A stretch of 43,356 bases of DNA, from contig JAHLWZ010000628.1 of assembly GCA_020536535.1 (NCBI GenBank), positions 1 through 43,356 of the forward strand, read 5' to 3'. The notes beneath the pieces were generated by a model that worked only from the letters and a program-made list of their open reading frames with translations, did no database searches and was not told the origin of the DNA. Position 1 is the first letter of the stretch, and each line of letters starts with the position of its first letter. Origin of the DNA: Pelomyxa schiedti. Its lineage: Eukaryota > Protista > Evosea. The translations under genes and the position numbers were made by a program. Below are positions 23,317 through 30,453 of this stretch, one piece after another.

Positions 23317-24800
23317 ATGAGCACGTCGTATCAGGAGTGGTTGCAGCGGGATCGAGGGAGTTTGGAGGCACGTGTTGCTGAGGCGTATCGAATATGGGAC
23401 TCGTGTGTGATGTGTGGGAGACGATGTGGTGTCAATAGATTAAATGGTACATAAGAAACTGAAACCTTTTACTACCCCACTTACTATTTTATTCTTTTTC
23501 CTTCATAGGGAGCATGGGATATTGTAAGGCTCCTCGAAATGCCTTTGTGTGCCATATTTACTATTTGGTTTTGGCTTTTCCTTACGAGGGGATAGCTTTG
23601 TTCATGGAACCCTCACTATGGAGAAGAACCCCCTTTGGTTGGCAGATATGGCTCAGGAACGGTATTTTACCTATTTAAAAAAATTAAGTCTAACTCCTCT
23701 CAAGATATTTTTCAGTTCATGCAATCTTCTATGCGTTTTTTGCCAAAATGATGACATATCCCATGGACGTGAGGGTAAAGAGTATACTCCTGCGCAGCTT
23801 GCTGATATTGTAAGTACTTCACAAGAAAATACAGCTCAAAATCGCAAAATGACACCTCAACAAAAAACCTATTTGTGTGTTTGGCAAAAGTTGTATTTTG
23901 TACCAATGCACCTTTAGATGCTTTCATTGCAAAATCAAAGGCGATGCCACAACATCAATTTAGTGACCCCGTCTCATCAGTTGCCTCCCATTTTGGAAGC
24001 CATTGTTATTGCCGCTAAAGTAAAATGTTACTCGTTCATTTTAACTCTAACAGTTTAAGGCTGGTTTGGATATTCCAATTGTTTGGAATTGCGGTGGTTA
24101 TGAAAGCATGGAAGCTATGCACCTCTTAGATGGAATTGTTGATGTTCGTCTACCCACTTCTTCCCATGTTGGGGCTAATAGAGTAAAGATATATATGCCC
24201 GATTTCAAATTCTGGGAATCAGATCCTGCCAGAAGATTTATGAACACCCCTGACTATCGTGAGGTGGCCTGCACAGCAATCAAGGAGATGCATCGGCAGG
24301 TTAATGACATGGAATTGTGGCTTTGCTCCTAATGGCCCACAGGTGGGCGTGTTGAAGCTTGACTTCTCTGGAATCGCCAAAAGAGGCCTGCTTATAAGGT
24401 TTCTGGGAGTGCGATTGTTAGCAAACTTGGGAGTTTATTGAAAGGCGATTACAGGCATTTGGTCATGCCCAATGGTCTTGCGGGGACAAGACAGCTTGTC
24501 CAGTGGATTGCAGCTGAGCTGTCACCAAAGACGTATGGGAGAACCCAACAAATAACAACCAACAACGAATGAAACCGGCACCAAACCCCTAACCATTGAA
24601 CTCCAGTTGGATCAACGTGATGGGACAATACCGGCCTTGCTTCAGAGCCTCAGATTTTGAGGATATTGCCCGCAGGTACTTCCTCATTTCACTAGAAACA
24701 CACTTGTTTATCTCATGACATCACCAGGCCGTCGGCACGTGAAATTACTGAGGCAATCACCTATGCCAAAGAAGCAGGACTCCACCTTGTACATGACTAA
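23317..24800 (+). CDS. pflX: PflX-like radical SAM Fe-S protein (putative pyruvate formate-lyase activating enzyme family), about 11 exons
   Basis: CVMCGRRCGVNR, HYGEEPPLVG..GSGT|IFFSSCNLLCVFCQN (CxxxCxxC), CHNINLVTPSH, IPIVWNCGGYES, LLDGIVD|IYMPDFK, GLLIR|HLVMP, NVMGQYRP; TAA at 24798-24800. Confidence 0.93.
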
Positions 24801-24880
24801 AAATAAAACAAGAGAGATACTTTGAAGTAGGTTTTTGCTTTTACTTCAAAAGGTGTGGAGTGTCTATTTTGAGTACTGGG

Positions 24881-27800
24881 TCAAGGCAATGGTTTCATGC
24901 CCCGTAATTGACATGTGCTTAAGTACAATTGACGAGCAGGGGAGGGTGTGTCAACTAACATTGAGCCAGGGACTGGTTCCCAGTTGACTTTATCTGTGTA
25001 GTAGTACAATGCAAACCGTTCCTTCCTGTTGTGCATGAGTTCTGTGTTTATAAGTTGTCAGTACATCCGATGTAGTAAGGTAGATCACTTACGCCAGACG
25101 GAAGCTGTCGTGGCGTGGAGCTGGAGTCGTAGTATACTTCCATATGGATCTGTTTGCATCACTTGGCCTATGGGACCTAGTTTTTCCTCTACGAGATAAA
25201 GCCGACTTGGTTCAACAATGACCACTACGTCCATCATCGGAACGATAAACTGCGGTTCGGCAGCTGATTCCAAGCTGCTGAACAGCGGTCTCAGGGCGCC
25301 GTGGACTTGTCCCATTCCTATATGTGTTTGTTGAAAAAAAAACAGGAAGTGAAGGAGGGGACTGGCTGTACCTCGATGAATGGAATCAGAATGGAAGGTG
25401 CAATGGGTCAAAGTAAGCAGAAGGCCAGTGATCTTGGTAAATTTGGTGGATCACATTAATGCCATGGTGGGATCTTATGGGAAACTCACTCGAGAACCAC
25501 ATAGCTGCTCTGAGGTACACAAGATCGGGAAACTGGCTTCAAGGCAAGAGGCTATTTCTCTAACATTCAGGGAGGGTTCCACCGCCAATACGTTGTCCTC
25601 GAACACACAGAGAATCCTCAACTCGGATACATTTAGCTCACGACATTTTTCGTTCAGACTCTTGATGTCGGAACCCTTGTGACAAGAGATAACTGCGACA
25701 TGTTACGTGCAGATACACGCCATTATGCACATACAGGAAAGAAATTCCGGTGACAGAGGGCTTGCTGTAAATGTGAAATCGTTGTGACGATTGGGTGACT
25801 TGCCAGAGACTGTGGCAGAGCGAGTGAGCCGTATTTGTGTGAATATGACTGGTCGCTCCATCTAGGAAAGGGCAGAAGTAATGAAAGTGATGAAGTTGGG
25901 GAGCCTTACATCAAAAAGCGATTCGTTAGGACCCGGCTCCATCAGAGAAGGGAACAACAAGGGACGCATATCCTCGGGCTCATGAGAGAGTGCCTGGAAT
26001 AATAAGGTGGGGCAAGGGGTAAAAGGCTGCTTTATTTCATCTGAGGGTAATTTTAATACACACACCATATGCAAACTAGAAAAGATATTGCACACCACAC
26101 AGCAGCTTGTCACTGGCCAATATCATCGGCTTTTCGACGTCACCAGAAGACCAATTGACTCCAACAAAAGCTCCACACCCGGCTACAGTCAAAGTTTCAC
26201 ATCTCGTTCCATTCATGGCAATGATGCGTCTAATGATGCGTGGTTTCTTGAAACCGTAAGGGGAGAAAAAAAGTATTGATGGGGAAGTGGCGCACCTCAC
26301 TTTGTCTGTAGAACATTGGAATAGAGTCGTGCATGGTTCCCGATAGGATTCGGCACATGGTTGTATTCTTGGATGGGAATGGGTAGACTGATTGCAAGTA
26401 TATAACAAGAGGACCACTGGCAGAGCAGTTATGTATGGCTGCCTCAAGCTGGAAAATGTGGGAAACCATAATAAAAGACGAGACGAGTTCCTACCCTAGC
26501 ATTTGAGGACTGGAGAAACTCTTTAGCCCTGTATTTTTGGGCTTCCACTGGTGAAGGAATATTTGCTTTCACCATGGAAAGAAGGGAGCGCTGAAGAAAC
26601 AAGAAGTTTCCTAGCAGTTGCTTCCGCAGGGGTCGCAAAGTAGAGTCTCTCCTAGAACGTTTTAGTATTGATAGCAGTTGGTTAAGTCAATCTTACTCTA
26701 GTTCCAGATTTAAGGTTTTGCCAAAGCGCCTGAGGTCTTCTTCTGTGGCGGTTGTGTAGATTTTGACAAGAGGCTCCAAAACATATTTCTCAAAGCCAGT
26801 GACAGAAGTACCTTCTTCACCTTTCTAATTTTATGAGAGATCAGATATCACTCTCTGAGTGGAGGTGCCCAACCTTCAACCAACGCGAGTGAGGGACGTC
26901 CCAGCACCAATTTCCCCACAATTTTTCGACTAATTTGTCTTCCTCTATTCCTAACTTCTGTGCGTACACTCTTGCAAATGTGGGCAAAGTGAATCCCCAA
27001 TTTTGCAGTCCACATGAAAACAAGACGTTTCCCTTTATCTTTTTCAGCAAGGGAATCAAAAGGGAGCCTATTACACACTCTGTCGGGTCTGGCGTTCAGG
27101 TCTCCCATTGTAGAATCACCCTTCAGGTGATAGGCTACAACTGAGTTGAACTCCTGTACATGGGCATATATCCTGTTGCTGAGCTCGGAAATGGTACAGG
27201 TCGTGTCACTCAACAGTACATCTAGCTTGTTCACACAGAGAAGTGGTTTAACTTTGTGTTTAATAGCTTTTGCAATGAGCATGTGCTCAGTGGGACCAAA
27301 GCCATCCTGGACAGTGGTTACGAGTAAGCAGCCGTCGATAACTGTCCAGACACTGGAAATTATCAGAAGGATCAAATATTAAAAATGACGTGTACTTCTC
27401 AAGGAAGAATTCCCTATGAAAGTTCACACATGTGATTTCCCCCCTTTCCTGGTGCAAAAGAGGCACTACTCGCGGATTTATTGTGATCCCTCTCTACAGG
27501 TAACCATTAAACAAGTCGTGGAAATATGAGTGCAAAGTACCAATTGTTCATCTTGTCGGGTATCAGTATAACGCATTTCTCCAGCGGGCTTCGCCCATAA
27601 AGCTAATCGAAGGTGAGAAAGGGAATTGTATGGGGTAGACTTAAACTTTACCAGAAGGTGGTACCACCGCTGGAATTCCAGAAGCCGTAGTTGTCTCGGT
27701 GATGCTTGTTGCTGCTGATGGAATTTCAGAAGATGTCATACTTTCAGAGACAGCTGTTTCACGTTTTTGAACTGCCACAAAAGATGTGTACTTGGACAGT

Positions 27801-29991
27801 AAAGAATGTCTGAAAGAAATTTGAGCATATACAAGAGGTCAATCAAGAGCTTCTCAACTTTATTCCAAGACTGATAATGAGAGACTGTGCTTCTGCGCCT
27901 GATATCCCTGAAATAAAGCCCATCTCGAGGTCTCTAATGTACCTTCTGGCAGAAAGCTTGGAAATTTGATTTCCTGTCTGGAAGTGGTTGGCCGAATCTC
28001 GTTTTGGAGAAACTTACAGAGGTAATTTGGGCAAGATCTAAAGCGACAGTCCATGATTGCTCCTTTCCAGTGCTATCTGTGCCACAGAGTGTAACACTTC
28101 CCCGACTAGAGTTTGAAGCAGGAAACGAGGCATAGGCAACCAGATTTCCACCAGAAAACACAGGGGGTAAGGTAGAGGGTATGCACACAATTGGGGTAAT
28201 CCCTGTGTCGAATTTTAGGCTGAGATTCACTAGAGCAGGCTGTAGGGCATTAGACATCTGTGAAGTTGCCTCCTCTCTTAAACTTGAATCACCAAGTACC
28301 ATGACATGTGTTCCATTGCCTTTGTTGAAATTTTAATTTTGGTGCTTAGTGATAGGGGAGTTAACCTGATTTGGCAAGATTTTCAGCAAGTTCCTTGGAA
28401 GCAGGACCAATCCCAAAGCTGAAGATCCGGATGGTGCCTGCTCGATTGTGCACAGCCATGAGTACTTCTTGTGAATTTGAAATTTCTCCATCCTTTCAAA
28501 TTGTAAGTGGAAAAAACCTCAATACAGTGCACATACAGTAAAAACCATAATCTGTCTCGAGGCACCTGGCTTTAACGGTTGAGAAAAAATGGACTCCAAG
28601 GGTTGCAGTATTTCAGTGCCTGTGACGACTGTTATTTTACCGTTGTTGAAAAAAAAAGGGCACCTCCGAGATCAGCTTCCATTGCCCAAACCCGGGGTGT
28701 TGCCTCTGAAATCTGAGTTGTTGAGGCAATGACTGGAGAAGGGTAAAAAGACTCATATGTCGAACCAAAGCGCACAATGTCTGCAAAGAGTCAAAAGAGG
28801 AACAAAAGGAAAACATGCACCTACTGAAGAATACATTTGATGGAAGGAGTCCAAGACACGAACTTAAGGTCGATCGAGTGGTAGCAATCCTGCTTCCAGA
28901 CATGCCTACATTTGGTAAGCTGAACTCGACTCAAAGATTGATACTTACTTCCTGAACAATCTACCAGGAAAATAAATTCTGTGTTAAGCAGAGCCGAAGC
29001 TGTGTCGAAAAGGGGATTGAACGTGATCATTGCAGTTTTGCTAGGTGATTGGTCTGCAAACTCCACCCAGACATTTGGCTCATGTATGCCAGCATATGAA
29101 ATAAGTAAACGGAAATCGCTTTTCAACGACTCCGCCAGCTAACAAGTAACATAAGAGCACGACTTTTAAAACTGATATTTACATTCAGAGATACTGTTGC
29201 CTTACTGCCAGAGAGTGTGCTAGTGCACATGGGGTGAGATGGAGATGAGATGTGTGATATTTCGGAGGCCATGCTTATACTGATTGAAACGCTACAGGTT
29301 GGTGACGGAAAACCTTTGGAGTGTTGGAATACAGCTAGGTTTCACTTGCAAAACTGTTACCAAGGTGCGATGGAGTGATCTGTGTGGGTAAACAAAACTC
29401 AATACTGTTGTGTTCCTGTGGATCCACGGGTAATTCCTAGTCGGTGCTTAGATAGCTAGCTTTTCAGGTGGGAAATGCCTGTGTGTAGTGTATCTTTAAA
29501 AGAACTTTCTCGGTTGGGAGAACGTTTCCACAAGACGCGCGGAAAAAAGAAGGACCAAGCTGTTCTATTAGAAAAGCACTGTGCCCTTGTTTTTTTAAAA
29601 AAAGTTAGTTAGAACTACTTCGAGTCACTCTAAAAGTGGGAGTACCTGAGGCAATCGAGTCATCATACTTATTGGCAGCAGTAGTTTTCTCCATGATTTG
29701 TGCTTGAATGACCCTTTATCATAATGAGCGCCGGATAAAAATGAACTATGGGAAAGCAAAAGCAAAAGCAAAAGCGAACTTGTTTGTGGTCACGACAGTG
29801 ACACCATAGACAGCCGCCGTTGCAGGCATCTGAAAAGTAACGAAGCCCTCCACGGGCCCCGCTGTGTTATTGACATACTCCTGCTCCACCTCTACGTCGC
29901 AGCTCCACCCCTCGATTCTCGCCGCCACCGCGACGCGCGTAAAAGCCAGGGGAGGCATCGTGCCGACTTTCGGAATTGTGGGTGTCGCCGC

Positions 29992-30033
<42 letters not shown>

Positions 30034-30189
30034 GGCCGACGTTGGCGGCGGGGTGGTCCGTGCGTACGGGGGCCCCCCAATCAGGCAATCCTGCAACGTA
30101 GTGCACCCCCTGTCGAAATCCCCAACTACAACAATGTGCCTCATCGTGGCAGCACCGCCTTCGAGCTCGCATGTCACGAACTTCTCCAT
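24881..30189 (-). CDS. Chimeric eEF2-like pseudo-GTPase with a VIT + vWA module (VWA5A/PARP4-type) inserted in the G domain; multi-exon
   Basis: Degenerate G1 (RHIVVVGDFDRGCTTLQDCLI), then VIT (CDVEVEQEYVN..PVEGFVTF; KYDDSIASG), vWA (EFIFLVDCSGSMSG; IFSFGIG) and SKYTSFVAV. An in-frame splice (intron 27603-27651) leads to eEF2 segments: AGEMRYTDTRQDEQL|RGITI, IDGCLLV, KPLLCVNKLD, GNVLFSCGLQNWGFTL, KLWG, IPSPVEAQKYR, GKSPNRHN, FHSDSIHR|GMGQ, AEP, WEPVPG...LRGMKPLP*. Confidence 0.8.
29993..30031. repeat. (GAC)13 trinucleotide microsatellite encoding poly-Ser on the minus strand
   Basis: Perfect GAC run at 29993-30031, in the linker between the degenerate G1 motif and the VIT domain. Confidence 0.95.
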
Positions 30190-30453
30190 CGTGAACGAGA
30201 CGCGATTTTTATTTCTTTGACTTGTTTTCGGCAAACATCAGCGATACGCACCATCACACCGGTTCAGGAGCCATTCCAGGAATCGTTCCTGCACCGGATT
30301 TGAGGGAGAACGGACCCAAGAAAAAAGGTACGAAGAGAGTGTGATGAAACGAAACTGTTCTGACGGCGGAACGAAGACAGGAAAGGGTGAAAGTGTAGTT
30401 TGGGGTTGTCTGGTTTAGGGAACACACCCAAAGTGCGGGGATTTAGTTTAGTT

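Follow-up and report, generated by a model that had tools for sequence, protein, structure and literature searches.

Results

Gene structure and expression

The 43,356-nucleotide (nt) stretch of Pelomyxa schiedti DNA analysed here (assembly GCA_020536535.1, contig JAHLWZ010000628.1, positions 1 to 43,356; hereafter the window) carries on its minus strand, at 24881-30189, a single expressed gene of 27 exons that encodes a protein of 1352 amino acids (aa) derived from eukaryotic elongation factor 2 (eEF2), whose G domain is, almost certainly, split by a nested VIT-vWA unit. All coordinates given below are those of the window, and the gene is read from 30189 down to 24881 (Table 1). The open reading frame (ORF) fragments found in this interval all lie on the minus strand and switch frame every 60-300 nt. 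RNA evidence for their assembly came from contigs of three single-cell libraries generated in one study, to which one DNA run was added. Over 24600-30400, the RNA contigs confirm 13 of the 26 introns, with GT-AG borders and lengths of 40-57 nt. The most informative of them, record 3 of set X1, is one spliced RNA contig of 809 nt that spans 28173..27156, from which the introns at 27978-28017, 27810-27858, 27603-27651, 27494-27540 and 27353-27395 have been removed, and which connects the C-terminal region of vWA and the SKYTSFVAV motif to switch I, the G3 remnant and G4. Because this contig crosses 27603-27651, the junction between the insert and the eEF2 part is a real mRNA splice. The first-pass annotation of this DNA had bridged the two frames with that same 49-nt intron, and had allowed that they might instead belong to two separate transcripts; one spliced contig in fact runs from the end of vWA through G4 of eEF2.

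In the stretches that lack RNA cover (28174-30189 and 26346-26946), the structure was solved by splice-site scoring between peptide anchors. The resulting model consists of 77 residues followed exactly by the deposited protein KAH3760179.1 (P0001 hereafter; 1275 aa, named "von willebrand factor a [Pelomyxa schiedti]"), with which residues 78-1352 are identical. Since the deposited protein begins at Met78 (ATG 29956-29958), it is without the G1-like piece and the poly-Ser linker. A stop-free frame, however, extends over 30237-29749, so that the G1-like segment and the start of VIT share the same open exon, and an independent DNA contig spans 24600-29976. Two other solutions were rejected, namely a minimum-intron model of the 5' half, which read through real introns, and a low-penalty splice model, which was over-split; anchor-guided splicing checked against P0001 was used instead. 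Database searches were run with single exons or with P0001, and the joined 1352-aa model was used only locally, for the splice check and for tblastn against loci of the same genome.

A few features of this region are worth recording separately. The deposited model implies a 42-nt GC-AG intron at 29437-29478, in a stretch without RNA cover, where no GT-AG solution preserves the conserved VIT segment VLLKIHYTQ. The coding repeat for poly-Ser (29977-30042) is the breakpoint of independent Logan contigs, and intron 1 contains a dinucleotide microsatellite (29714-29779). At a first look, which is preliminary only, the intron positions are seemingly unshared with the canonical eEF2 genes of Pelomyxa.

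The VIT-vWA unit

Combinations of VIT and vWA domains occur in VWA5A, PARP4 and ITIH proteins. The unit found here, of about 530 aa and of the PARP4/VWA5A type, sits between two flexible linkers of approximately 45 aa each and is as complete as the first-pass annotation had claimed, with both domains recognised by Pfam (Table 1). P0001 residues 11-545 could be aligned to PARP4 628-1183 with an E-value of 9.1e-46, and over 92-100% of its length the insert shares 30-35% identity with VWA5A proteins. The residues of the metal ion-dependent adhesion site (MIDAS; DxSxS, T, D) are intact, as DCSGS (28904-28961, split by an intron), GGT and TDG, in alignment with P0123, the Cavostelium protein described below. 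What is missing is the C-terminal domain of about 100 aa found in VWA5A and Vwa1, in place of which a 45-aa Ser/Thr linker leads into switch I of eEF2. The paper on Dictyostelium Vwa1 (PMC10539598) relays from the structure of ITIH1 that a C-terminal strand completes the VIT sandwich. By analogy, SKYTSFVAV probably represents this closing strand (VITpt2), which would bring the two ends of the unit close together and thus suit it to insertion into a loop.

A split G domain without GTPase motifs

Evidence that the eEF2 G domain lies on both sides of this unit comes from several comparisons. When the first 44 aa were searched against Pfam, GTP_EFTU was the sole family at E-values up to 10, with the first 37 residues corresponding to profile positions 3-24 only (E 0.063), while P0001 589-739 matched the same family (E 2.5e-9) at positions 41-176 only, thereby complementing the N-terminal match. 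When the N-termini of the Pelomyxa and Cavostelium proteins were combined into a two-sequence profile and compared, using hhalign, with an 873-column profile of 20 eEF2 sequences, they fell on residues 19-48 of eEF2 (P 6e-4), which comprise beta1, the P-loop and alpha1. The G1-like character of the N-terminus proposed in the first-pass annotation is thus recovered in profile searches. A search for homologous proteins with exon 1 returned nothing. PDB matches of the downstream part to eEF2 begin at residue 46-49. As eEF2 residues ~1-45 precede the insert and ~46 onward follow it, the break can be placed in the loop between alpha1 and switch I; the Cavostelium protein is arranged in the same way. 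We therefore have very little doubt that this is a nested insertion, rather than an end-to-end fusion, and that the gene belongs to the family described below.

The motifs required for GTP hydrolysis have been largely lost. In the Pelomyxa P-loop, GDFDRGCT, Lys is replaced by Cys and the consensus GxxxxGK[ST] is not matched, as had been noticed in the first-pass annotation; the absence of DxxG noted there is also real, and is due to deletion, not mutation, of the five-residue DSPG segment of G3, a segment absent in Cavostelium as well. G4 is kept as NKLD in Pelomyxa, where switch I is likewise well preserved, and reads NQLD in Cavostelium. The P-loop Lys and DxxG are essential in P-loop GTPases, and their loss in both species would rule out a GTPase cycle of the eEF2 type; that this paralogue is no longer a GTPase seems to us highly likely from its motifs. 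In spite of the loss of the catalytic Lys, beta1 is still hydrophobic (IVVV) and the amphipathic helix alpha1 still shows its T-L-x-D-x-L pattern, which is the kind of retention expected if the G1-like segment still packs into the G domain. A complex prediction for the 44-aa N-terminal piece and the remainder of the G domain scored 0.20 (mark 0.34), a value that counts neither way.

Origin of the eEF2 body and selective retention of its surfaces

Both sequence and structure searches assign the body of the protein to eEF2. Phmmer against PDB returned eEF2 (1.2e-48) ahead of Snu114 (1.2e-28) and EFL1 (1.7e-26), and the best Foldseek match is also eEF2 (E 3.1e-42). A phylogeny including the three groups, which the first-pass annotation had suggested, places the gene within the eEF2 clade (support of 92 in the Shimodaira-Hasegawa-like approximate likelihood ratio test, SH-aLRT) and outside the Snu114/EFL1 clade (90); an affinity to Snu114 or EFL1 was rejected on the basis of these weaker E-values and of this exclusion. 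As to the extensions that characterise Snu114 and EFL1, the Pfam search of P0001 gave no match to PF16004 or PF25118. Modelled with AlphaFold2 from 46 homologues, P0001 560-1275 reached a mean predicted local distance difference test (pLDDT) value of 78.5, with G, G', II, IV and V confidently modelled and values below 50 in the domain III remnant (model residues 422-462). The domain II-, IV- and V-like segments noticed after the insert in the first-pass annotation are present. Domain III, which that annotation could not find, is not entirely gone, since a remnant of 39 aa (1057-1095) is left.

Conservation along this body is strikingly uneven. Identity to eEF2 is 25-30% overall and the branch is approximately 10-30 times as long as those of canonical eEF2. 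When positions at least 90% conserved in 20 eEF2 sequences were scored for being kept, retention was highest in G' (71% in Pelomyxa and 90% in Cavostelium) and domain IV (55% and 71%), intermediate in the G domain (44% and 30%) and domain II (26% and 50%), and lowest in domains V (13% and 27%) and III (8% and 19%). What has been selectively preserved is hence G' together with the two tip loops of domain IV, while the catalytic motifs and domains III and V decayed. In eEF2, these tip loops reach the decoding centre and bear diphthamide. The loop with the diphthamide-position His is interrupted in the Pelomyxa gene, directly after IHRG, by a 54-nt intron (25318-25371) that is in frame and stop-free; its retention would insert 18 aa at the tip of domain IV, and the RNA contigs seen are spliced.

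An orthologue in Cavostelium apophysatum

The search with the VIT-vWA region returned a protein of the same design, P0123, a complete Trinity ORF of 1414 aa from Cavostelium apophysatum (EukProt EP01114), so that another eEF2-like paralogue with an insert in the same loop, which the first-pass annotation had proposed to look for, does exist. It contains, in this order, a G1-like N-terminus, VIT (83-193), vWA (328-494), SKYTSF, a linker, a degenerate switch I and an eEF2 body, the latter made of a G domain that lacks DxxG and reads NQLD at G4, domain II, a domain III that is diverged but of full length, and domains IV (EFG_IV, 1.2e-16) and V, with a C-terminus of the eEF2 type. Its G1 is dead as well, since the P-loop Lys is replaced by Val; its MIDAS residues, like those of the Pelomyxa insert, are intact, and its diphthamide loop, TSDAIHRGPGQ, keeps the His at the target position. 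BLASTP aligned P0123 and P0001 collinearly in a single alignment of 1277 columns (28% identity, E 2e-113). The N-termini of the two members are 44% identical, and the G1-like piece lies at the same distance from Met1 in both.

The eEF2 parts of the two proteins are sisters, with an SH-aLRT support of 97 in one tree and 68 in another, and so are their inserts (93), each of which finds its best match in the other (36% identity). That the two proteins are collinear and share their insertion point is evidence independent of trees. Within the phylum Evosea, Pelomyxa is a member of Archamoebae and Cavostelium of Variosea. Finding the same design in both implies that the family predates the Archamoebae-Variosea split, and the simplest reading of the sequences would be one fusion before these lineages separated; the collinear orthologue also argues that the design is old and under selection. 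P0123 was missed by both searches that used the eEF2 part, so that further members may have escaped detection. When the domain IV-V piece was searched against 1.84 billion representative proteins, P0001 alone was retrieved, and ESM Atlas gave no usable match. As for the canonical factor in Cavostelium, P0003 (841 aa) is an eEF2 with intact motifs and a fairly long branch, 46-58% identical to the Pelomyxa canonical eEF2 genes from one high-scoring segment pair to the next, and judging from these sequences Cavostelium too may have more than one type of eEF2.

Related genes in the Pelomyxa genome

Searches with two exons of the eEF2 part did not reveal a second copy of the gene in the 52-Mb assembly. 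Both of its components have relatives there. At least 30 VIT loci are present (53 exon-level matches on about 40 contigs), among which is a stand-alone VIT-vWA gene on contig C238 (L029) that ends in SKYTSFVCV, has no eEF2 part and is approximately 30% identical to the insert. On another contig (C841; L026, 3383-7282), an intron-free ORF of 1300 aa has vWA (176-338) before VIT (697-804), the reverse of the usual order; this frame may in fact join two separate units. Canonical eEF2 genes with intact G1, G3 and G4 occupy at least five loci (C434, C1237, C792, C803 and C149; L022-L025 and L036), some of which may be alleles or recent duplicates. Pelomyxa also has its own Snu114-like and EFL1-like genes (contigs C76 and C310, respectively), as well as intron-containing genes of the Dph1/Dph2 type.

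Two further eEF2 pseudo-GTPases were found, one at C408 (L034), with a near-copy at C2665 (L037), and one at C943 (L035). Both resemble the nested gene in being derived from eEF2 and in having lost DxxG; their G4 reads NNVD, and the diphthamide His position is occupied by Arg in C408, whereas His is kept in C943. They differ from it in being recent branches inside the Pelomyxa eEF2 clade (100), and in showing no special similarity to it (22-28% identity). At these loci, tblastn found no match to VIT-vWA, nor, upstream of them, to eEF2 residues 1-92. Because they fall within Pelomyxa's eEF2 clade, they arose independently of the nested gene, and eEF2 has thus given rise to pseudo-GTPases repeatedly in this genome.

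Table 1. Features of the nested eEF2 paralogue of Pelomyxa schiedti, in window coordinates.
Feature	Residues (aa)	Position	Strand	Basis or remark
Whole coding sequence	1-1352	30189 to 24881; stop 24881-24883	-	27 exons, 26 introns of 40-66 nt, 1352 codons plus stop
G1-like piece: beta1, degenerate P-loop GDFDRGCT, helix alpha1 TTLQDCLI	16-37	30079..30144	-	Pfam, hhalign, alignment
Linker 1, Pro/Ser-rich with poly-Ser run; contains Met78	38-84	29938..30078	-	Sequence
VIT domain, exons 1-3	85-193	29485..29937	-	Pfam VIT E 1.1e-23 (P0001 8-116)
vWA domain	319-476	28282..28976	-	Pfam VWA_3 7.7e-22 (P0001 242-391), VWA 1.1e-10
SKYTSFVAV, end of VIT-vWA unit	609-617	27770..27796	-	Conserved in P0123 and in the C238 paralogue
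Linker 2, Ser/Thr-rich, split by intron 13	618-662	27586..27769	-	Sequence; low pLDDT in model
GT-AG intron (49 nt) between insert/linker and eEF2 switch I exon		27603..27651	-	Joint 27602/27652, X1 record 3
Switch I (AGEMRYTDTRQDEQLRGITI)	663-682	27479..27585	-	Aligned to eEF2 from residue 46-49 on
Rest of G domain and G' subdomain, to IPSPVEAQKYR	663-938	26528..27585	-	Pfam GTP_EFTU 2.5e-9; pLDDT 85-95
G3 remnant VNFHREFF; DSPG (DxxG) segment deleted		27404..27427	-	Alignments
G4 motif NKLD, kept		27220..27231	-	Alignments
Domain II, 12-column deletion	939-1056	26024..26527	-	Alignment; folded in model
Domain III remnant (39 aa)	1057-1095	25859..26023	-	36 of 79 columns deleted; pLDDT below 50
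Domain IV	1096-1243	25262..25858	-	phmmer alignment to eEF2, Foldseek 3e-42
Domain IV tip loop KSPNRHN		25781-25801	-	Kept
Domain IV tip loop HSDSIHRGMGQ, with diphthamide-position His		25307-25393, split by intron 25318-25371	-	Kept
Domain V and shortened C-terminus	1244-1352	24884..25261	-	Last ~10 eEF2 residues missing (alignment)

Discussion

Our analysis describes what is apparently a conserved and so far undescribed family of eEF2 paralogues with a nested VIT-vWA module. As the best overall explanation for it, to which we assign a probability of roughly 0.4, we propose that this nested, GTPase-dead eEF2 paralogue works as an adaptor. We favour this reading because selection has kept the MIDAS of the vWA domain, G' and both tip loops of domain IV. 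The protein would be unable to act as a GTP-driven translocase, and would most likely serve as a nucleotide-independent, eEF2-shaped adaptor, whose retained eEF2 surfaces (the tip of domain IV and G') may still engage the partners of eEF2. The ribosomal factor site and A site would be the most likely such partner, and we tentatively picture a static adaptor directed to the ribosome, on the strength of the surfaces conserved in the two sequences. There, the vWA domain, carried on two long tethers, could use its metal-ion site to hold a ligand through an acidic residue, as for instance a ubiquitin-ligase partner like that reported for Dictyostelium Vwa1, which binds the F-box protein FbxwD (PMC10539598). 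A more elaborate version, that of an ancient amoebozoan family of pseudo-translocases in which the GTPase-dead eEF2 body parks its domain IV tip in the A site, or carries diphthamide and stands in for eEF2, while vWA recruits a ligase or a tether, is in our opinion doubtful. Of the non-catalytic eEF2 mimic with a new function put forward in the first-pass annotation, then, the dead motifs are borne out, and a new function is a fair supposition.

Several observations weigh against the adaptor proposal or parts of it. Domains III and V contribute to the seating of eEF2 on the ribosome, and in this protein they have decayed more than any others, which argues against a canonical ribosome seat and keeps the decoy and scaffold explanations discussed below alive; in addition, a module placed where switch I begins might collide with the small subunit. 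In Pelomyxa, NKLD and the switch I threonines persist, leaving room for some residual nucleotide binding. RNA cover over 28174-30189 is zero, and translation from Met1 instead of the deposited Met78 is presumed from the open frame and from the orthologue. Finally, two members of the family are known in all, both on very long branches (2.6-4.4 changes per site), and their sister grouping, whose support dropped to 68 in one of the trees, could be due to long-branch attraction.

Alternatively, the protein might be a ribosome-independent scaffold, that is, a cytoplasmic VIT-vWA protein of the VWA5A/Vwa1 type for which the eEF2 body is a structural platform serving, for example, oligomerisation, autoinhibition or localisation. 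The completeness of the insert with its intact MIDAS, the abundance of VIT loci and the existence of stand-alone VIT-vWA genes in this genome, and the degeneration of the ribosome-seating domains III and V would all agree with it. A mere platform, however, leaves unexplained why tip loops of the eEF2 type, G' and, in Pelomyxa, switch I are still there after about 3 changes per site, and we consider this explanation rather unlikely. A role as decoy or sensor of factors recognising the tip of eEF2 domain IV is less likely still. Such a pseudo-eEF2 would be diphthamide-modified, or bound by the diphthamide machinery or by bacterial ADP-ribosyltransferases that target eEF2, and would either soak up these factors or signal the attack through VIT-vWA, in the manner of an integrated decoy. 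Both species have indeed preserved the tip loops and the His at the diphthamide position, in contrast to the decayed domains III and V and catalytic motifs, genes of the Dph1/Dph2 type with introns are at hand, and Pelomyxa lives with bacteria and eats them (PMC10579272). Contact with the ribosomal A site would equally preserve the tip loops, however, and the retention of G' is left unexplained; furthermore, decoys are usually close to their model, whereas this protein has only 25-30% identity to eEF2, and there is no sign of modification or of any toxin in the system.

That the gene is a decaying, functionless duplicate, or expressed pseudogene, appears very improbable to us: its very long branch, lost motifs and truncated domain III could be read in this way, but the 1352 codons in 27 exons are open and correctly spliced, the architecture is preserved in another class of Amoebozoa, and retention among domains is strongly uneven. 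Hardly credible, lastly, is an artefact in which assembly or annotation merged two neighbouring genes, or in which the G1-like stretch is an untranslated 5' leader before a start at Met78, as the start of KAH3760179.1, the lack of RNA cover upstream of 28173 and the contigs broken at the poly-Ser repeat might suggest, given that a spliced RNA contig unites both halves, the DNA contig over 24600-29976 is independent, no stop interrupts the frame between 30237 and the first donor, and Cavostelium has a complete ORF whose G1-like N-terminus, at 44% identity, is equally far from Met1.

Few eEF2 paralogue lineages are known, chiefly EFL1 and Snu114, and the family described here would add one in which a multi-domain module is nested in the G domain and GTPase chemistry is lost. 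Full-text searches of the literature brought up neither a paper in which elongation factor 2 is joined to VIT and von Willebrand domains nor one on a comparable eEF2 decoy or pseudo-GTPase paralogue; such a form also goes unmentioned in a 2015 survey of translational GTPases, and the section on VIT/vWFA evolution of the Vwa1 paper (PMC10539598) gives PARP as the added domain and is silent on a combination with eEF2. The architecture is also invisible in current annotation, where the record is named "von willebrand factor a" and the G1 piece is omitted. Seen as a natural experiment, the contrast between the surfaces kept (domain IV tip loops, G') and those lost (G1, G3, III, V) shows which surfaces of eEF2 can matter without translocation, and it opens questions about ribosome occupancy by an eEF2 mimic, about diphthamide on a protein other than eEF2, and about the ligands of cytoplasmic VIT-vWA proteins. 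Should the pseudo-translocase version hold true, these proteins would regulate ribosomes in a novel way, or would serve as integrated decoys for toxins that target eEF2.

In spite of its divergence, the Pelomyxa protein has much in common with eEF2, as the order of domains (G, G', II, IV, V) is unchanged and one can still recognise switch I, NKLD, KSPNxHN and the HxDxIHRGxGQ loop. It departs from eEF2 in that a module of about 530 aa, with its two linkers, interrupts the G domain, in having lost the P-loop Lys and, by deletion, DxxG, and in its truncated domain III, eroded domain V and shorter C-terminus. That eEF2 bodies can be put to uses other than translocation, sometimes with large insertions or extensions, has precedents in EFL1/Ria1 and Snu114, which however retain their GTPase motifs, carry those insertions or extensions elsewhere, and have no VIT-vWA. 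On the side of the insert, VIT, a vWA domain with MIDAS and the closing SKYTSF strand are all shared with the unit of VWA5A, Vwa1 and PARP4, and PARP4, to which the match is full-length, likewise combines VIT-vWA with an unrelated scaffold of the catalytic type. In those proteins, however, the unit stands alone or is joined end to end, and in VWA5A and Vwa1 it is followed by a C-terminal domain of about 100 aa, as described for Vwa1 (PMC10539598), whereas in Pelomyxa a Ser/Thr linker takes the place of this domain and the whole unit is nested inside another.

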